A stretch of 64,000 nucleotides of DNA from IMG/VR virus record IMGVR_UViG_3300023174_000036, positions 1 through 64,000 of that record; one strand, given 5' to 3'. A program made the position numbers and the translations under genes. Below, one piece after another: positions 1,759 through 8,475 of this stretch; positions within the stretch are counted from its first letter, which is position 1, and every line of letters starts with the position of its first letter. The notes under the pieces are model-generated. The model searched no databases, had not been told where the DNA came from, and saw only the letters and a list, made by a program, of their open reading frames with translations.

Positions 1759-2160
1759 ATGAGCAAGATTCTAAATTTTCGTCCAGTGTGCGTGAATCAT
1801 GGTTGCAACAAGCCAGTGATGCAAAAAGGCGGCACTATTGATAATCCCACTGGCTGGCGAGTGCATTGCGGGCATTGCCAAAAGGCATCATATGGCGGGC
1901 ACGCTCATGCTGTGGGTGTTACTCCATTCAAGACAGGCCAATGCTCAAATCAACAGGGCAAATTGGGATTCTCTTGTGTGATTGATTGGGAATCAGCCAG
2001 CCAGCAAGGATTGGCCATTGCCACTGAGATTGATCACATCAACGGCGACCACATGGATAACAGACTGGTAAATCTGCAGGAACTTTGCCCAGTGTGCCAC
2101 AAAATCAAAGGCCAACGAGAAGGCAACTATGACGGATGGCGCAACTACAGAGCTGGTTGA
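1759..2160 (+). CDS. HNH endonuclease-like zinc-binding protein
   Basis: DHINGDHMDNRLVNLQELCPVCH; extra CxxC pairs; start moved to ATG 1759 after GGAG. Confidence 0.8.
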   Translation: MSKILNFRPVCVNHGCNKPVMQKGGTIDNPTGWRVHCGHCQKASYGGHAHAVGVTPFKTGQCSNQQGKLGFSCVIDWESASQQGLAIATEIDHINGDHMDNRLVNLQELCPVCHKIKGQREGNYDGWRNYRAG

Positions 2161-2185
2161 CACTCTAACCAAAAGGCAGTATAAT
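2157..2185 (+). promoter_or_regulatory. sigma70-type early promoter
   Basis: TTGACA 2157-2162, 17 nt, TATAAT 2180-2185. Confidence 0.85.
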
Positions 2186-2213
2186 TAACACATAAACACA
2201 CACAGGAGCGAAG

Positions 2214-2462
2214 ATGATAGCAGAACAAACCCGCACAGTAGTATTCCAGGGCATCACATACGATGCCACACACGGTGGTCCATTCGATAGAGGCTCAGCA
2301 GACAGCTACTACGGTCGCCCACAAGTTCCCCACAAATACCCCAACGGCACTGGCAATGCTCCACGCATTGAAGCCCCAGAGCTGACCCTAGCAGAGATGC
2401 GCGAGTACTACAGGGGCTATGAGTACAATGAGTGCTTTGGCGACAAGAAAGACTGGGGTTGA
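2214..2462 (+). CDS. Hypothetical early protein (HGGPFDRGSADSYY motif)
   Basis: Own promoter and AGGAGCGAA RBS. Confidence 0.8.
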   Translation: MIAEQTRTVVFQGITYDATHGGPFDRGSADSYYGRPQVPHKYPNGTGNAPRIEAPELTLAEMREYYRGYEYNECFGDKKDWG

Positions 2463-2487
2463 CAGCCCGCCCAAAAGGCAGTATAAT
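2459..2487 (+). promoter_or_regulatory. sigma70-type early promoter
   Basis: TTGACA 2459-2464, 17 nt, TATAAT 2482-2487. Confidence 0.85.
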
Positions 2488-2517
2488 TAACACATAAACA
2501 CACACAGGAGCGAACCT

Positions 2518-2712
2518 ATGCTAGTACACTTTATCAACACCGGACACGGTTTGGACATGGGCGTGAAAGAAGTAGAATGCCAAAGCCTCCGGTTGGACCA
2601 TTCGGATGCACCCTACGCCATCGTAAGCCACCCTTTCCAACCCAACGGATGCTGTAGAGCAGAGCGCAACTATTTCAACGGCGAACTGCAATGGGTGGTT
2701 GACTTCGATTGA
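2518..2712 (+). CDS. Hypothetical early protein
   Basis: Own promoter and AGGAGCGAA RBS. Confidence 0.75.
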   Translation: MLVHFINTGHGLDMGVKEVECQSLRLDHSDAPYAIVSHPFQPNGCCRAERNYFNGELQWVVDFD

Positions 2713-2727
2713 TTTTGGCGCTATAAT
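2699..2727 (+). promoter_or_regulatory. sigma70-type early promoter
   Basis: TTGACT 2699-2704, 17 nt, TATAAT 2722-2727. Confidence 0.8.
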
Positions 2728-2760
2728 ACACACATACACAGCAAATAAGGAGCGAACTTT

Positions 2761-3090
2761 ATGCAACTGCTAATCACTACACAAACACAAGAAAACTACG
2801 GTGCCCACGATTGGGACGGAGTTGGTGAGTGCCCACAGTATTGGAAGTTCAAAGGCGGCCAGGACTACCGGTATGATTTGGGCAAGTTCGGTCGTAGCCA
2901 AGAGGCGCTCACTGAGTTGGTGATGGCCTTGCGTGGCCAGATTGAAGAAGACAATGACTACTACCGCAACCACATCATTGGTTGGGAAGTGGTTGCAGAC
3001 GACTACCTCACTGAGTTCGAACAGAGCCAGTTGGAGTACGAAGGGCGCATTGCCTATCCCGCAACCCGTTTGGAGTTGGAGACTGCATGA
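2761..3090 (+). CDS. Hypothetical early protein (ENYGAHDWDG..ECPQYWKFKGG)
   Basis: Own promoter and AGGAGCGAA RBS. Confidence 0.8.
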   Translation: MQLLITTQTQENYGAHDWDGVGECPQYWKFKGGQDYRYDLGKFGRSQEALTELVMALRGQIEEDNDYYRNHIIGWEVVADDYLTEFEQSQLEYEGRIAYPATRLELETA

Positions 3091-3188
3091 ACGACATCTT
3101 GTATGCGTTCTATATCACTATGGAACTGTGGATCTTCTGCGGTGTCCTGTTGACAGCTTTGGTAATTGAAGCTATAATTACTACTTAA
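3087..3188 (+). CDS. 33-aa hydrophobic peptide (MNDILYAFYITMELWIFCGVLLTALVIEAIITT), not in ORF track
   Basis: ATGA overlap with upstream stop; single TM-like stretch. Confidence 0.45.
   Translation: MNDILYAFYITMELWIFCGVLLTALVIEAIITT
3150..3178 (+). promoter_or_regulatory. sigma70-type early promoter
   Basis: TTGACA 3150-3155, 17 nt, TATAAT 3173-3178. Confidence 0.85.
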
Positions 3189-3212
3189 ACAACACAATAG
3201 GGAGCGACCCAA

Positions 3213-3596
3213 ATGGCTAAAACAAATTATGACAACTTCGCGAGCTTTGACCTTAACGAAGCCTGTGATCACTTTGACTGTACTGATCAAAAGGCCTGGA
3301 AGAAGATCCGTCCTTTCATCGTAGCAGACGGTGAAGAGTACGCAGAGGTCATGGAGAAAGAGTTTGACTTTGAAGAAGTCACCGACACAGACCACATGGT
3401 GTTTGAAGCAGGCGTCAAGTATGCGCTTACCAAAATGAACATTGCACTGGACAAAGCAGGCATAGACGTGCAGGTCTGCGAGGTAGACTTGGTAGAGAGC
3501 ATGGGCTTTATGATGGTCCGTTGCGATGACGAGCCCGAGGACTTTGTAAAACGAGTGCTGAAGAAGCCCGTCATGATGGTTGACAGCTGGGTGTAA
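3213..3596 (+). CDS. Acidic hypothetical early protein
   Basis: Own promoter and GGGAGCGAC RBS. Confidence 0.8.
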   Translation: MAKTNYDNFASFDLNEACDHFDCTDQKAWKKIRPFIVADGEEYAEVMEKEFDFEEVTDTDHMVFEAGVKYALTKMNIALDKAGIDVQVCEVDLVESMGFMMVRCDDEPEDFVKRVLKKPVMMVDSWV

Positions 3597-3608
3597 TCCA
3601 GTTATAAT
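3580..3608 (+). promoter_or_regulatory. sigma70-type early promoter
   Basis: TTGACA 3580-3585, 17 nt, TATAAT 3603-3608. Confidence 0.85.
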
Positions 3609-3643
3609 ACATACTTACACAACACAACATAGGAGCGAAACTT

Positions 3644-3970
3644 ATGATTACAGCAGATCAAATTGCAGTTGGCAAACAACTAGCAGAGCAAGCGTCAGTA
3701 GACATGTACAACCAAATGGGCCGCAAGGATGCATTTGCCTGTGGCTTTGCTTGGGTAGACGTCTACGTGGATCGTACTAACAGCAAGCAGGCTAAGGAAT
3801 TGATTGCCGCAGGCTTTAAGAAGGACTACAAACCAAAATGTCTGAGCATTTGGAATCCAGGCAATTTGCCAGTCCAAAACATCGACATCAAAGAAGCGGG
3901 TGCGGATGCTATGGCCACTTACTTGAGAGGTTTGGGTTTGAATGCCTACAGCGGATCACGTTTAGACTAA
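3644..3970 (+). CDS. Hypothetical early protein (CGFAWV...SRLD)
   Basis: Own promoter and AGGAGCGAA RBS. Confidence 0.8.
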   Translation: MITADQIAVGKQLAEQASVDMYNQMGRKDAFACGFAWVDVYVDRTNSKQAKELIAAGFKKDYKPKCLSIWNPGNLPVQNIDIKEAGADAMATYLRGLGLNAYSGSRLD

Positions 3971-3979
3971 CCAAATGAC

Positions 3980-4008
3980 ATGACACGGAGTCGCCTCCGT
4001 GTTATAAT
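3980..4008 (+). promoter_or_regulatory. sigma70 promoter with palindromic spacer (possible operator)
   Basis: ATGACA-17-TATAAT; ATGACACGGAG-TCGC-CTCCGTGTTAT inverted repeat. Confidence 0.7.
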
Positions 4009-4039
4009 TAATGTATATTAACACGCGAAGGAGCGAACA

Positions 4040-4936
4040 ATGGGTAATAAAGTTGTTACTAGTAAGATGTTGATGGCCCTGCAGAGTGATGTAAAGACTT
4101 TGGAAGTGGACACTACAGCAATTAAGGCCAAAGAAGCGGCATTGAAGAACGAAACAGATGAAGACATTTTGGGTCGTTTGCGTGACCGTTTTGAGATACT
4201 GGACGACATGACTCGTGCAGTCAAAGCAGGCAAGGTACGTGCTATGATTGTAACAGGCCCTCCAGGCGTTGGCAAGAGTTATGGCGTAGAGAATGTACTT
4301 TCAAAGCATGATGTGTTTGCTAACGTAGCACAAGACGAGAAGCTGAAGAAGTACGAAGTGGTTAAAGGTGCTATGTCAGCACTGGGCTTGTACAGCAAGC
4401 TATACCATTACAAGGATGCCAAGAACATCATTGTGTTTGATGACTGTGACTCAGTATTGCTGGACGACTTGAGCTTGAACATTCTCAAGGCAGCTTTGGA
4501 TACAAGCTCCAAGCGCATGATCCATTGGAACACTGACTCACACCTATTGCGTCGTGAAGGCGTGCCAGACAGCTTTGAGTTCAAGGGCGGTGCTATCTTT
4601 ATTACCAATATCAAGTTCGATCACGTTAAGAGCAAGAAGCTCCGCGATCACTTGGAAGCATTAGAGTCACGTTGCCATTACTTGGACTTGACTATTGACA
4701 CCACACGTGAGAAGCTACTACGCATTGAGCAGGTAGTTAACGAGTGTGGCATGTTGGACAAGTATGAGTTTGAAGACTACCAAAAGAGTGAAGTGGTAGA
4801 CTTTGTTAAGGCCAACGTTGACAAGCTACGTGAGCTGAGCTTGCGTACAGTACTTAAGGTAGCTGACTTGAAGCATGGCTTCCCGGACAAGTGGCGGGCA
4901 GTAGCAGAGGTTACATGTATGCGCAACAGCCGCTAG
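4040..4936 (+). CDS. AAA+ / P-loop ATPase
   Basis: Walker A GPPGVGKS, Walker B IIVFDDCD, sensor IFITN, ALESR; AGGAGCGAA RBS. Confidence 0.85.
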   Translation: MGNKVVTSKMLMALQSDVKTLEVDTTAIKAKEAALKNETDEDILGRLRDRFEILDDMTRAVKAGKVRAMIVTGPPGVGKSYGVENVLSKHDVFANVAQDEKLKKYEVVKGAMSALGLYSKLYHYKDAKNIIVFDDCDSVLLDDLSLNILKAALDTSSKRMIHWNTDSHLLRREGVPDSFEFKGGAIFITNIKFDHVKSKKLRDHLEALESRCHYLDLTIDTTREKLLRIEQVVNECGMLDKYEFEDYQKSEVVDFVKANVDKLRELSLRTVLKVADLKHGFPDKWRAVAEVTCMRNSR

Positions 4937-4945
4937 GCTAGTGTG

Positions 4946-5114
4946 TACAGTACAGCAAGCAGCCTACAAGAGCTGTACGCTGTAGCAGTAGGACAAGCTA
5001 GTAGATTCGCTCCCGAACGCTTGCCCATAAACACTAACGCCAACAAGGCAATGGTGTTTGGATCTAGGAACTCGTAAGCCCGATTCGCTCCCGGCTAGTT
5101 CCTAGATTTTTTTT
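4946..5114 (+). ncRNA. Putative structured RNA (four hairpins; two loops with GAUUCGCUCCCG) ending in an intrinsic terminator
   Basis: Stems 4950-4978, 4991-5026, 5029-5059, 5062-5107 followed by T-tract; 12-mer repeated at 5004-5015 and 5082-5093. Confidence 0.65.
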
Positions 5115-5255
5115 GATCGGATTATCGAAAAAGAAAAGCCTCCCGGAGGTTGAGAATACGAAATATTCTGCGAGGGGGGGTCGGGGCATATACATTTACA
5201 ACTGTTGTATTTTTACAACAGCGCATGGAATTTTGGTGGGCATAGGTGCCAAATC

Positions 5256-5860
5256 ACCCCACCAAAAGCATAAGTACTTCTTTATAATTTTTTGCGCAAC
5301 GCCGCTACAGGTACACAGGACCATTTTGGGCATAAATACCACATAGAGGATCCATCATGCCAACACCCATATTACCCACCAAAACACAACTAGCTGGACT
5401 GCAATTCACACCCAAACAGCTGGTAGCAGACAAAACCGTTGAAGAGTATCTCACCATTACCAACAACTATGATTTCATACTCAAACTCATAGCCCAATAC
5501 AGAAGCGGAGCCAGAGCGTCATGGGCGGGTACTGGTGTAACTCCAGATGCATCCACTTATACTGAATTTGTTTATTTTTGTGATCTCCCCACATTGAATC
5601 TATTGATTGAGTATCTCACCAATGTAGACTATGGTTATGGCTATGTTGTGAAAGTGGCCAAAACTTCAGTTGGTTGGGAAACCAGAACCACTGCTATCTC
5701 CGTCACACCCAGTGACAGTTACATACTGCCCACTGGCAACAACGCAGGCAAATACGCACTGTTGGTATCTTGGGCTTAAAAACAACCCCACCAGAACTTC
5801 AAGTACTTCCCAAATTTTTTTTTGCGCCCACAAAAAATGGGCCCTAAAGACCCATTTTGG
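5256..5860 (+). repeat. Imperfect ~75-80 bp direct repeat at 5256-5329 and 5785-5860
   Basis: Shared blocks ACCCCACCA, AAGTACTTC, TTTTTTGCGC, CCATTTTGG in the same order and similar spacing. Confidence 0.75.
5357..5779 (+). CDS. Hypothetical protein, probably late
   Basis: CATAAATA at 5331-5338, GAGGA RBS. Confidence 0.75.
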   Translation: MPTPILPTKTQLAGLQFTPKQLVADKTVEEYLTITNNYDFILKLIAQYRSGARASWAGTGVTPDASTYTEFVYFCDLPTLNLLIEYLTNVDYGYGYVVKVAKTSVGWETRTTAISVTPSDSYILPTGNNAGKYALLVSWA

Positions 5861-7316: not shown

Positions 7317-7381
7317 AAAAATATTTAGCCCATACACTAAAAAGTTAAATATCATATACACCAACAAGGATCACGTGCCGT

Positions 7382-7921
7382 ATGACTTTAATAGAATTTC
7401 CGCTTGAAAAATTCATCAACGCTTACCAGTTCAACGGGTCAGAAACCAATGCTGAACTGATAAGATTAATACGCGAGGACGGCGGCAAATTAAGTCAGCA
7501 AACTGTGGTCAAAGCCTACATGACTGATTGGCGCTTGACCATGGATCATCAAAGTCCGTTACTGGATCCTTTCTTCAAGTTTCTCAATGAAGGGTTGTCC
7601 CACAGTATAGCCAGCCTTGCAGGTGTTACCAAAGATCCTTTCAAATATCGCATTGCCAACATTTGGGGAGCAATATACAGCAAGGATGACCACACTGAAG
7701 CACACAGTCACGCACCTTGTCAAATGAGTTTTGTGTACTATGTTCAAGCAGATGACTCAGTATCTGCTCCATTGATATTTCCTGAAATTGAACACACAGT
7801 GATACCCAGCACTGGCATGCTGGTCATATGCCCAGGTTGGCTTACCCATTATGTGCCCAAGTACAATCCAGTCACTGGGCAAGAACGCATAGTTATTGCA
7901 GGCAATATAGAACTACAATGA
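7382..7921 (+). CDS. Putative 2OG-Fe(II) oxygenase
   Basis: HSH...SFVYY...PGWLTHYV...RIVIAGN. Confidence 0.8.
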   Translation: MTLIEFPLEKFINAYQFNGSETNAELIRLIREDGGKLSQQTVVKAYMTDWRLTMDHQSPLLDPFFKFLNEGLSHSIASLAGVTKDPFKYRIANIWGAIYSKDDHTEAHSHAPCQMSFVYYVQADDSVSAPLIFPEIEHTVIPSTGMLVICPGWLTHYVPKYNPVTGQERIVIAGNIELQ

Positions 7922-8475
7922 TAGACAGCACAGCACCAATCAGTTTTAACCTTGGACGATTTGTAAACACATACCAGTTCAGTGATTCTGAAACAATTCA
8001 AGCACTGATAGACACAATTAGGGCAGAAGCTGTGCGTGGCCAAAGACCCAGTAATGTACAGGCTTTGGTCACATGGAATCTTTACAACATTGATCACAAT
8101 GCCCAACCACAGGATAGATTTTTTACTTTTTTAAAAACCAGCCTTGAACACAGTTGGTCCAACTTGCTGTGTGATAACAAGGGCAGTGAATCAGTCAACT
8201 TTCGTATCAGCAGTATGTGGGGAGCAATTTATCAGCCAGGCGATTGGGCAGATTATCACACACACGGGCCCAGCAGAACCAGTTGGGTATATTATTTGCA
8301 AGCTGATCCTACTCAGGGTGCTCCTTTGGTTTTTGATAATACTGGTTATGAAATAATGCCCACCACTGGACAATTGATCATGTTCCCCAGCTGGTTGGGG
8401 CACAGTGTTCCCAAATTTATGCCCAAAGATGCCAGTGAACGCATTGTGCTGGCTGGCAATGTGGAAATACAATGA
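7918..8475 (+). CDS. Putative 2OG-Fe(II) oxygenase, tandem paralogue
   Basis: HTH...SWVYY...FPSWLGHSV...RIVLAGN; ATGA overlap. Confidence 0.8.
   Translation: MIDSTAPISFNLGRFVNTYQFSDSETIQALIDTIRAEAVRGQRPSNVQALVTWNLYNIDHNAQPQDRFFTFLKTSLEHSWSNLLCDNKGSESVNFRISSMWGAIYQPGDWADYHTHGPSRTSWVYYLQADPTQGAPLVFDNTGYEIMPTTGQLIMFPSWLGHSVPKFMPKDASERIVLAGNVEIQ

Follow-up and report, generated by a model that had tools for sequence, protein, structure and literature searches.

RNA hairpin loops complementary to the ribosome-binding sites of early genes in an uncultured freshwater giant phage

The sequence analysed here is a window of 64,000 nt (64 kb) that forms the start of a 356-kb IMG/VR phage contig (IMGVR_UViG_3300023174_000036). 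Its first 5.1 kb carry a block of early genes on the plus strand, each led by its own promoter, and six of these share an extended ribosome-binding site. The last of the six encodes an AAA+ ATPase and is followed by a structured non-coding stretch of 178 nt. The features of this region are as follows.

2157-2216, plus strand: early promoter (TTGACA-17-TATAAT, 2157-2185), short CA-rich leader, candidate target site AGGAGCGAA at 2204-2212 and ATG at 2214 of an 82-aa protein with no family; predicted loop/leader duplex -14.1 kcal/mol.
2459-2520, plus strand: early promoter (2459-2487), leader, candidate target site AGGAGCGAA at 2506-2514 and ATG at 2518 (64 aa); duplex -13.9 kcal/mol.
2699-2763, plus strand: early promoter (2699-2727), leader, candidate target site AGGAGCGAA at 2748-2756 and ATG at 2761 (109 aa); duplex -13.9 kcal/mol.
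3150-3215, plus strand: early promoter (3150-3178), leader, variant candidate target site GGGAGCGAC at 3200-3208, complementary to UCGCUCCC, and ATG at 3213 (127 aa); duplex -16.8 kcal/mol.
3580-3646, plus strand: early promoter (3580-3608), leader, candidate target site AGGAGCGAA at 3631-3639 and ATG at 3644 (108 aa, phrog_22149); duplex -14.1 kcal/mol.
3980-4042, plus strand: promoter of the ATPase gene (ATGACA-17-TATAAT, 3980-4008), whose spacer is itself a covarying hairpin (3984-4003), and leader with candidate target site AGGAGCGAA at 4029-4037 and ATG at 4040; duplex -13.9 kcal/mol.
4040-4936, plus strand: AAA+ ATPase gene (298 aa), a homologue of T4-type NrdC.10 (phrog_1250) and host gene of the 3'UTR.
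4937-5114, plus strand: the whole non-coding 3'UTR element, four hairpins ending in an intrinsic terminator.
4937-4986, plus strand: 5' hairpin module with the conserved loop words AGCAGCC..AGAGCUG, optional in that it is present in 16 of 63 distinct relatives.
4991-5026, plus strand: display hairpin 1, stem 4991-4998 with 5019-5026 and a 20-nt loop carrying seed 1, AUUCGCUCC, at 5005-5013.
5028-5060, plus strand: middle hairpin (AAACAC.../...GUGUUU) with a small GCC-AACAA-GGC tip, present in part of the relatives and probably a spacer or scaffold.
5062-5114, plus strand: display hairpin 2, which is also the intrinsic terminator, with outer stem 5062-5072 with 5097-5107, invariant inner stem CCG/CGG (5080-5082 with 5092-5094), a 9-nt loop with seed 2, AUUCGCUCC, at 5083-5091 and a U-tract at 5107-5114.

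A preliminary description made from the sequence alone had reported the shared ribosome-binding site, its absence from genes after 5.1 kb, and a folded stretch of some 170 nt in which the complementary sequence appears twice in loops, and all of these observations were confirmed. Each of the six leader sites lies 5-9 nt before an ATG and behind a perfect or near-perfect TTGACA-17-TATAAT promoter, and GATTCGCTCCCG lies at 5004-5015 and 5082-5093. The 7-mer GGAGCGA occurs exactly 8 times in the window on both strands together, comprising the six leaders on the plus strand and the two loop copies on the minus strand, whereas shuffled sequences gave 2.2 expected copies and a maximum of 6, with 0 of 100 shuffles reaching 8. 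No gene after 5.1 kb has the motif. However, three other promoter-led early genes in the window (starts 503, 964 and 1759) lack it, so that it marks a subset of the early genes and not all of them.

The stretch 4937-5114 is predicted to fold into four hairpins (-59.1 kcal/mol, z = -3.5), the last being the terminator, ATCTAGGAACT/AGTTCCTAGAT followed by a T-run. Its 11-bp outer stem is directly followed by T8, an arrangement shared by nearly every relative. Both motif copies lie in loops and opening the 8-nt seeds costs only 1.0-1.7 kcal/mol. The predicted loop/leader duplexes range from -13.9 to -16.8 kcal/mol, in comparison with -6.5 to -8.5 kcal/mol for the same leaders with a canonical 16S rRNA tail. 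A ranking of all ORF starts of the window by plain duplex energy against the whole 3'UTR was misleading, as it ignores intramolecular structure and pairs spurious ORFs with the stems, and we therefore rely on the exclusive motif count.

We considered whether the stretch might represent a known RNA or a small gene. A covariance-model search against Rfam 15 returned only the two tRNAs for the whole window at gathering thresholds and nothing for region 4800-5400 at E<=10, including for the C4 antisense RNA model. A tRNA-like T-loop reading of the motif was rejected as ARAGORN and Rfam find nothing there. A 44-aa GTG ORF at 4943-5077 was also rejected, because the region varies in length and sequence between close relatives everywhere except the loops. 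The word GGGCATA, considered as an enriched promoter word downstream, is not enriched in the window overall.

In order to address the conservation of the element we collected relatives through the ATPase gene, behind which the element is conserved. In cultured-phage DNA (INPHARED) near and distant nucleotide searches found only tRNA matches and nothing for the element, and a protein search found the ATPase only at 47% identity or less. In PA5oct-like Pseudomonas phage 30-3, RB69 and Vibrio phage phi-Grn1 the ATPase gene is followed directly by the next gene and complementarity is only 6 nt, which is not significant. No cultured model was found. A search for homologous proteins returned only close relatives, while a search of representative sequences reached outgroups. 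A scan of IMG/VR for the 14-mer CGATTCGCTCCCGG gave many single hits, but by our rough estimate hundreds of matches are expected by chance in a collection of that size and only hits next to an ATPase homologue were informative; these revealed a sister clade.

In about 90 distinct relatives (ATPase 70-100% identical) the 9-nt loop AUUCGCUCC is invariant while the stems around it are rewritten by compensatory changes. In display hairpin 2, compared over 39 relatives, all 9 outer pairs show compensatory changes and 89.5% of cells are paired, with a covariation score of 0.74 against at most 0.43 when partners are slid. The equivalent of display hairpin 1 in 26 relatives has 7 of 9 pairs with compensatory changes and 98.7% of cells paired. 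In both cases 0 of 500 shuffles reach the observed score and slid controls are far lower. An invariant 9-nt loop on an invariant 3-bp inner stem, set on variable outer stems, is typical of protein-recognised hairpins, and the second loop sits inside a terminator, raising the question as to whether the loops bind a phage or host protein in the manner of boxB/N or a coat-protein operator, for instance to control termination, with the complementarity to the leaders being secondary. This explains neither why the loop is the exact complement of the leader motif in the main clade nor the lineage comparisons described below, and we consider it improbable.

The leader motif is likewise conserved. Over the related loci L001-L080 (our numbering of the relatives) there are 355 plus-strand copies upstream of the ATPase stop codon, of which 338 have an ATG 5-9 nt after GGAG and 327 have a -10 box within 60 nt. 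There are 158 minus-strand copies inside the 260 nt after the gene and only 31 copies in 364 kb further downstream. Among 403 distinct early leaders the positions after GGAG are C, G, A and A in 95, 76, 71 and 65%, respectively, whereas non-early genes of the window have A or T after GGAG. The match is nevertheless partial, with only about half of the promoter-led early leaders in the clade, and 6 of 9 in the window, carrying it in full. About half of the early leaders match over only 5-6 nt, and in some main-clade genomes (L007, L010) the ATPase leader itself lacks the motif, so the regulon is partial and fluid. The same loop is found in the sister clade (ATPase 62-70% identical), relocated about 800 nt downstream behind two extra genes, and at the ends of other early operons.

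Within the main clade the core (UCGCUCC/GGAGCGA) never varies, and co-variation of loop and leader therefore rests on comparison between deeper lineages. In more distant ATPase lineages the 3'UTR hairpin loop carries a different sequence, and each time it is complementary to that lineage's own leader. Loop and leader change together across at least 12 lineages, for example GAUGGAGCG/CGCUCCAUC, AAAGGAACAGAA/UUCUGUUCCUUU, GGAGGAGCAA/UUGCUCCUCC, GGAGAGAG/CUCUCUCC, and AGGAGUAACUA/UAGUUACUCCU beside AAGGAGCAA/UUGCUCCUU, with one U.G wobble variant, and the architecture is the same each time, a display hairpin followed by a terminator. As a mononucleotide-shuffle null for leader/UTR matches gave more 8-10-mers than naive expectation (6% at 8 nt or more), we compared cognate with non-cognate pairs by permutation. 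Across 12 lineages the cognate match averages 9.4 nt against 6.0 nt for non-cognate pairs and is uniquely best in 8 of 12 rows (p<1e-5, not corrected for phylogeny). Some related lineages lack the element altogether, namely the marine clade L272-282, L288-290, L266, L268, PA5oct-like and T4-like phages. A protein site would not be expected to track the leader in at least 11 other lineages with unrelated loop sequences.

These data also bear on a role at the DNA level, either as an asymmetric site for a DNA-binding protein present in both orientations or as short inverted repeats left by recombination around a gene cassette. The word does occur in both orientations within 3 kb and the leader copies lie at a fixed distance downstream of the promoters. 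However, DNA sites have no reason to sit in the loops of hairpins whose stems are maintained by compensatory changes, to tolerate U.G wobble or always to include the Shine-Dalgarno (SD) sequence, and six leaders sharing one partner is not a pairwise flanking of cassettes. We regard this reading as very unlikely.

The preliminary description had offered as an alternative a minus-strand transcript displaying GGGAGCGAA in loops as a CsrB/RsmZ-like decoy for a factor that binds the early leaders. On the minus strand the loops do carry the leader sequence itself, with GGA motifs, the minus strand folds about as well as the plus strand, and this model also predicts loop-leader co-variation, which therefore does not exclude it. 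The strand evidence disfavours it. The element lies between a stop codon (4934-4936) and a U-tract on the plus strand, so it is certainly transcribed as mRNA 3'UTR, and in some lineages it overlaps the stop codon. No sigma-70-like minus-strand promoter was found between 5100 and 7000. Stem variation uses G.U pairs, which would be C.A mismatches on the minus strand (7 against 0 in hairpin 1, about 35 against 14 in hairpin 2), and in lineage L306 the leader U faces a loop G, a wobble in the antisense model but a mismatch to the leader in the decoy model. As GGA lies on the minus strand only, the favoured strand lacks the GGA-containing loops of CsrB/RsmZ-type RNAs, and the decoy is very improbable.

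Our favoured explanation, held with fair but not full confidence, is that the 178 nt after the ATPase gene are the shared 3'UTR of a nested set of early transcripts, a plus-strand anti-SD element presenting AUUCGCUCC twice in accessible hairpin loops. These loops would base-pair over 8 nt (GGAGCGAA, or GGGAGCGA at 3200) with the SD region of six early mRNAs, including the ATPase mRNA. In this view the duplex, about twice as stable as that with the 16S tail, would block 30S binding and lower translation, and it may create a double-stranded nuclease target. As the element is only made once a transcript is finished, and 3' fragments protected by terminator hairpins tend to outlive their mRNAs, the expected behaviour would be a pulse of early protein synthesis followed by self-limitation. 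The complementarity, the conserved structure with invariant loops, the strand and the co-variation of loop and leader across lineages are demonstrated by our analysis. In the absence of expression data for this uncultured phage and host, transcript ends, processing, abundance, repression as the outcome, its timing, any RNase III cleavage, and action within one transcript (cis), between molecules as a processed 3' fragment (trans) or both are inferences from sequence and precedent, and an 8-bp seed without a known chaperone may be weak in vivo.

The interpretation given in the preliminary description, a 3'UTR-derived two-seed sRNA that shuts off a whole early regulon including its own host gene, is thus supported in part. 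Its core, a plus-strand 3'UTR RNA whose loops base-pair with the SD region of early mRNAs, is strongly supported by the comparison with related phages that had been named beforehand as a check. Release of a separate sRNA acting in trans remains an inference, as pairing within the same transcript fits the window equally well, shut-off is likewise inferred, and a whole early regulon is overstated. The terminator is shared with the parent mRNA and a consensus scan found no plus-strand promoter between 4008 and 5114, although such a scan cannot exclude a weak one. In the sister clade promoter-led GGAGCGA leaders lie downstream of the single element and its terminator, which is only a hint of action in trans.

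It is also possible, although unlikely, that the pairing is real but serves a purpose other than repression, closing the mRNA into a loop to protect the 5' end or the GGAG site from a nuclease (a RegB-like enzyme or RNase E), or coupling mRNA stability to translation. The same complementarity and co-variation would apply, and in several lineages (L312, L316 and the short clade) the anti-SD begins at or within 3 nt of the stop codon, so terminating ribosomes would melt it, which suggests coupling to translation. A 5'/3'-UTR interaction controlling stability is known for B. subtilis hbs (PMC5737220). Against this, an 8-12 bp duplex covering the SD sequence is expected to exclude the 30S subunit, and in two experimental precedents (PMC3868564, PMC12697547) the outcome was repression and faster decay.

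The first of these precedents is the anti-SD motif (UCCCCUG) of the icaR mRNA 3'UTR of Staphylococcus aureus, where a pyrimidine-rich motif complementary to the SD region of the same mRNA blocks the initiation complex and creates an RNase III substrate (PMC3868564). The element described here likewise lies in the 3'UTR of an mRNA whose SD it matches, with complementarity maintained in evolution, and the distant ATPase lineages (single gene, own promoter, display hairpin plus terminator) have exactly the icaR layout. It differs in belonging to a lytic giant phage, in being displayed in hairpin loops and duplicated, and in matching, in the main clade, a special extended SD shared by several genes, and there is no sequence homology. 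The second precedent shows that anti-SD-like 8-mers hundreds of nt from the RBS pair with it, inhibit initiation and speed decay (Gill et al. preprint, PMC12697547), which is the physical mechanism proposed here. There such sequences are deleterious and depleted, whereas here one is conserved, structured, duplicated and co-evolving with the leader, so it has been selected for.

C-rich-loop sRNAs of Firmicutes (RsaE/RoxS type) similarly use two or three loop-displayed pyrimidine seeds that pair with the G-rich SD of many mRNAs, but these are stand-alone bacterial genes with their own promoters and generic seeds (CCCC), whereas the present seed lies in a 3'UTR and carries a specific extension (UUCG before CUCC). 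The c4 antisense RNA of phages P1/P7 and CI RNA of P4 (PMC12197685) provide a phage analogue. Such RNAs are made from the same transcription unit as their targets, with short complementary sequences thought to lie in loops and one target covering a ribosome-binding site. Our two loop copies, with all targets at RBSs, resemble these in working principle only. The c4 RNA lies upstream of its targets, is cut out by RNase P, serves lysogenic immunity and controls one operon, whereas the present element is at the 3' end, in a virulent-type giant phage, with up to six or more candidate leaders. Processed 3'UTR-derived sRNAs such as CpxQ and SroC also share the terminator of the parent mRNA, but are not known to target their own mRNA's SD. 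A functional analogy only can be drawn with the T4 RegB endoribonuclease and RegA translational repressor (PMC3014915). These proteins discriminate early mRNAs through their ribosome-binding sites, RegB cutting GGAG in early SDs, while here the discriminator would be an RNA. As in T4, early genes of this phage use GGAG-type SDs and later genes mostly do not, and the ATPase is a homologue of a T4-type gene. We found no paper describing the element, and the earlier statement that nothing of this kind has been described holds, as far as we could search, for lytic phages, although close bacterial and temperate-phage analogues exist.

A more far-reaching possibility, which we put forward only tentatively, is that the terminator-protected 3' fragment accumulates during infection and acts in trans as an RNA timer, silencing a class of early genes marked by a private extension of the SD sequence (GGAGCGAA). 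This would be an RNA-based counterpart of T4 RegB/RegA early shut-off, evolved from an older self-limiting 3'UTR/5'UTR loop of a single ATPase gene, and it would be widespread in very abundant freshwater giant phages.

Post-transcriptional control by RNA is almost unexplored in lytic phages and the known means of switching off early genes (T4 RegB, RegA) use proteins. The parts described here are short and portable, a leader of about 25 nt and a hairpin of about 45 nt, which makes the idea accessible in a reporter system without the unknown host and, if it works, would give an orthogonal pair of ribosome-site barcode and silencer for synthetic biology. The locus is a clear, sequence-defined case in which a phage appears to tag a set of early mRNAs with an extended ribosome-binding site and to carry the matching anti-sequence in the 3'UTR of the same transcription unit, with natural co-variation across many lineages as evidence, and the ATPase search alone returned 8000 related proteins. 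It extends the 3'UTR anti-SD principle, known from a single bacterial gene (icaR), to viruses and to a multi-gene set, and suggests how a self-limiting loop on one gene can grow into a regulon.

The first 5.1 kb of the window hold nine perfect or near-perfect sigma-70-type promoters (TTGACA-17-TATAAT), all on the plus strand and each followed 25-35 nt later by a small gene. The last six of these genes, with starts at 2214, 2518, 2761, 3213, 3644 and 4040, have the ribosome-binding site AGGAGCGAA, with the gene at 3213 having GGGAGCGAC. The last gene encodes an AAA+ ATPase of phrog_1250 and is related at 34-37% identity to a gene annotated NrdC.10 in RB69 and as hypothetical or 'thioredoxin' in other T4-like phages. 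It is followed by a 178-nt non-coding stretch that folds into four hairpins (-59.1 kcal/mol, z = -3.5), in which the dodecamer GATTCGCTCCCG occurs twice, each time in a loop. The features of this region are as follows.

1530-1689, two tRNA genes, tRNA-Met (CAU) and tRNA-Arg (UCU), inside the early region
1692-1730, terminator hairpin after the two tRNA genes, overlapping the -35 box of the next early promoter (1702)
1759-2160, promoter-led HNH endonuclease gene
3980-4008, plus strand, promoter of the ATPase gene, with a hairpin in its spacer at 3984-4003
4040-4936, plus strand, AAA+ ATPase gene
4937-4986, hairpin of the 3'UTR without a seed
5004-5015, first copy of the dodecamer, in a hairpin loop
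5028-5060, further hairpin of the 3'UTR without a seed
5082-5093, second copy of the dodecamer, in the loop of the terminator hairpin, which is followed by eight T
5115-5356, region after the terminator with G-rich boxes

In order to determine how specific the motif is to these sites we counted GGAGCGA across the 64 kb. It occurs eight times on both strands together, and these eight are exactly the six leaders and the two loops, whereas shuffled sequences give 2.2 expected and none of 100 reach 8. What the preliminary description had observed, namely six early genes sharing one extended ribosome-binding site and two hairpin loops complementary to it, together with its coordinates, is confirmed in full, the only correction being that three other promoter-led early genes (starts 503, 964 and 1759) lack the motif. 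The two hairpins of the 3'UTR that carry no seed have conserved loop words of their own, AGCAGCC..AGAGCUG in 16 of 63 distinct relatives and GCC-AACAA-GGC, and no complementary partner for the first was found in the window. The region after the terminator contains, in addition to its G-rich boxes, three copies of GGGCATA (5184, 5238, 5328) and an inverted repeat ACAACTGTTGTA...TACAACAGCGC, and similar words follow the element in relatives. It may represent another promoter class or an origin, although GGGCATA is not enriched in the window as a whole.

The window is the start of IMGVR_UViG_3300023174_000036, a 356-kb contig of an uncultured phage, and our searches of cultured phages found nothing similar at the DNA level. 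The ATPase however is very common in metagenomes, with all 8000 candidates scored having E<=1e-20. Using it as an anchor we retrieved 80 and then 80 more loci at 70-100% identity. About 99 of 123 distinct downstream regions carry the word TCGCTCC, and 90 of them carry it exactly twice.

Comparison of these relatives shows that the structure is conserved and that the loops are invariant. The loop AUUCGCUCC is closed by a short inner stem, CCG/CGG in the terminator hairpin, and is identical in all these relatives, while the outer stems have entirely different sequences that still pair. In the terminator hairpin, across 39 distinct sequences, all 9 outer pairs show changes on both sides and 89.5% of cells are paired, compared with 37-58% when partners are slid, with a covariation score of 0.74 against at most 0.43 and none of 500 shuffles reaching it. 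In the first display hairpin, across 26 sequences, 7 of 9 pairs are compensatory and 98.7% of cells are paired, with a score of 0.74 against at most 0.14. Stem variation uses G.U but almost never A.C, the counts being 7 against 0 in hairpin 1 and about 35 against 14 in hairpin 2, which fixes the plus strand as the folded one. Together with the position of the element between a stop codon and a U-tract, and the absence of a minus-strand promoter nearby in our scan, this disfavours the alternative put forward in the preliminary description, in which a minus-strand transcript acts as a decoy. Such a decoy would also predict co-variation of loop and leader, but it fails on the strand evidence and we consider it very improbable.

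Variants of the element keep the same principle. In a short form the first loop starts three bases after the stop codon (CUG-AUUCGCUCC-CAG). In a sister clade whose ATPase is 62-70% identical (for example locus L124 at 7338-8250 and locus L087 at 1114-1990) the ATPase is followed by a Cys-rich protein gene (conserved GKSYC..HY..YKKG) and a small hydrophobic protein gene, and only after these two extra genes, about 800 nt further on, come a single copy of the loop element and a separate terminator. Some genomes carry further copies of the anti-Shine-Dalgarno (SD) module at the ends of other early operons. In the relative L078 (about 226-330) this is a two-loop unit plus terminator directly followed by a new TTGACA promoter, and in the relatives L030 (about 1860) and L045 (about 2130) it is a single loop, CUAG-UUCGCUCC-CUAG, shortly after a stop codon.

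The leader motif is conserved as well. In the loci L001-L080, GGAGCGA occurs 355 times on the plus strand upstream of the ATPase stop codon, and of these 338 have an ATG 5-9 nt after GGAG and 327 have a -10 box within 60 nt. It occurs 158 times on the minus strand inside the 3'UTR element and only 31 times in 364 kb further downstream, where the plus-strand cases are again promoter-led ribosome sites. Among 403 distinct promoter-led leaders that contain GGAG, the next four bases are C (95%), G (76%), A (71%) and A (65%), whereas non-early genes of the window have A or T after GGAG. The extension is therefore a mark of the early class and does not serve pairing with 16S rRNA. Only about half of the early leaders carry the full 7-8-nt match, with others reading GGAGCA.. 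or GGAGCT.. and expected to pair over 5-6 nt. The C is nearly universal even in leaders that then diverge from the loop complement, including GGAGCCC at 1748 of the window, which is unexplained by 16S pairing and only partly explained by the loop.

As the core never changes within the main clade, we looked further out using representatives of 50%-identity clusters of the ATPase and their contigs. Several independent lineages have the same layout of own promoter, short leader, ATPase, a hairpin with a large loop and then a terminator. In these lineages the loop has a different sequence, and each time it is complementary to that lineage's own leader.

Table. Leader and 3'UTR sequences in distant ATPase lineages (L numbers denote the loci representing each lineage).
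L271: leader GAUGGAGCG; 3'UTR CGCUCCAUC
L285: leader AAAGGAACAGAA; 3'UTR UUCUGUUCCUUU; 12 nt
L330: leader CAUCCACGCAAA; 3'UTR UUUGCGUGGAUG; 12 nt, next to the SD
L293, L295, L298: leader GGAGGAGCAA; 3'UTR UUGCUCCUCC
L300: leader GAGGAGCAAG; 3'UTR CUUGCUCCUC
L304, L315: leader GGAGAGAG(A); 3'UTR CUCUCUCC
L292: leader UGAGAGGU; 3'UTR ACCUCUCA; two copies
L367: leader GAGGGC; 3'UTR GCCCUC; three copies

Among close relatives there is also a compensatory series, consisting of AAGGAGCAA with UUGCUCCUU in L316, AGGAGUAACUA with UAGUUACUCCU in L312, and AAGGAGUAACUA with UAGUUGCUCCUU in L306, where the leader U faces a G. On an ATPase tree these types fall into separate, well-supported clades. With one representative for each of 12 lineages, the longest perfect complement is 9.4 nt on average for cognate pairs and 6.0 nt for non-cognate pairs, the cognate is the unique best in 8 of 12 rows, and no permutation out of 100,000 reaches the observed sum. 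A broader energy-based test on 50 leaders gives the same answer. These tests are not corrected for phylogeny, however the pair types differ in sequence and in register, so they are not inherited copies of one state. Other lineages have a plain terminator or no intergenic space and no complementarity, and the feature is gained and lost. A hairpin recognised by a protein does not explain why the loop tracks the leader, and we regard this reading as unlikely. A DNA-level site or inverted repeat, which we consider more unlikely still, does not explain the placement in loops, the co-variation of the stems or the wobble.

In order to address the strength of the predicted pairing we calculated duplex energies in the window. 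The 12-nt loop sequence forms an 8-bp duplex of -13.9 to -16.8 kcal/mol with each of the six leaders, whereas the same leaders reach only -6.5 to -8.5 kcal/mol with a canonical 16S 3' tail, and the early leaders without the motif reach -2.8 to -9.3 kcal/mol with the loop. Opening the seeds in the folded 3'UTR costs 1.7 and 1.0 kcal/mol. The loop contains UUCG, which fits the YUNR U-turn pattern common in antisense loops.

The element most likely represents a plus-strand 3'UTR anti-SD module. No terminator by the criteria of our scan lies between 2157 and 5060, and transcripts from all six promoters can therefore end at 5107-5114 and carry the two loops. In this view pairing of a loop with a leader covers the ribosome site and should prevent initiation, and because the loops are transcribed last each mRNA can be translated while it is being made and would then be limited. 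A terminator-protected 3' fragment could persist and act on other molecules. The complementarity, the structure, the strand, the conservation and the co-variation are established by our sequence analysis, whereas repression, its timing and the choice between cis and trans action are inferences from it. In favour of action in cis, in the distant lineages the match is private to the ATPase's own leader and sometimes lies outside the SD. In favour of action in trans, promoter-led GGAGCGA leaders in the sister clade lie downstream of the single element and its terminator. In addition, the spacer of the ATPase promoter, between ATGACA and TATAAT, is a perfect 8-9-bp hairpin (3984-4003) that may stop upstream transcripts before they reach the element. 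In 32 of 45 distinct relatives the same place folds at -5 kcal/mol or better with quite different stem sequences, and it is therefore a covarying hairpin overlapping a promoter, possibly a weak terminator or a 3' stabiliser for the upstream gene. The terminator after the tRNA genes, which overlaps the -35 box at 1702, is a second case of a terminator and a promoter sharing bases.

Experimental precedent for the physical step exists. The icaR 3'UTR motif UCCCCUG pairs with its own SD, blocks initiation and creates an RNase III site (PMC3868564), and anti-SD-like 8-mers several hundred nt from the RBS inhibit initiation and speed decay in B. subtilis (PMC12697547). A stabilising or translation-coupling role of the same pairing cannot be excluded, although we consider it unlikely. 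The interpretation offered in the preliminary description, of a 3'UTR-derived sRNA that shuts off translation of a whole early regulon, is thus supported in part, strongly as regards the pairing, while a separate sRNA acting in trans and shut-off as the outcome remain hypotheses. We are reasonably confident, though not certain, of a model combining pairing and repression.

No Rfam family matches the element, even at E<=10, and full-text literature searches found no description of such an element in phages. It would work like the icaR 3'UTR and like C-rich-loop sRNAs, and it resembles P1 c4 RNA in being made from the unit it would control (PMC12197685). By function it would be an analogue of T4 RegB/RegA, which single out early mRNAs through their ribosome sites. 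It is not a member of any of these families by sequence or structure, and the principle of such pairing is already known. What is new is its occurrence in lytic-type giant phages, the display of the motif in loops and its duplication, a private extension of the Shine-Dalgarno sequence shared by a set of early genes, and a visible evolutionary path from a single-gene loop to a multi-gene set.
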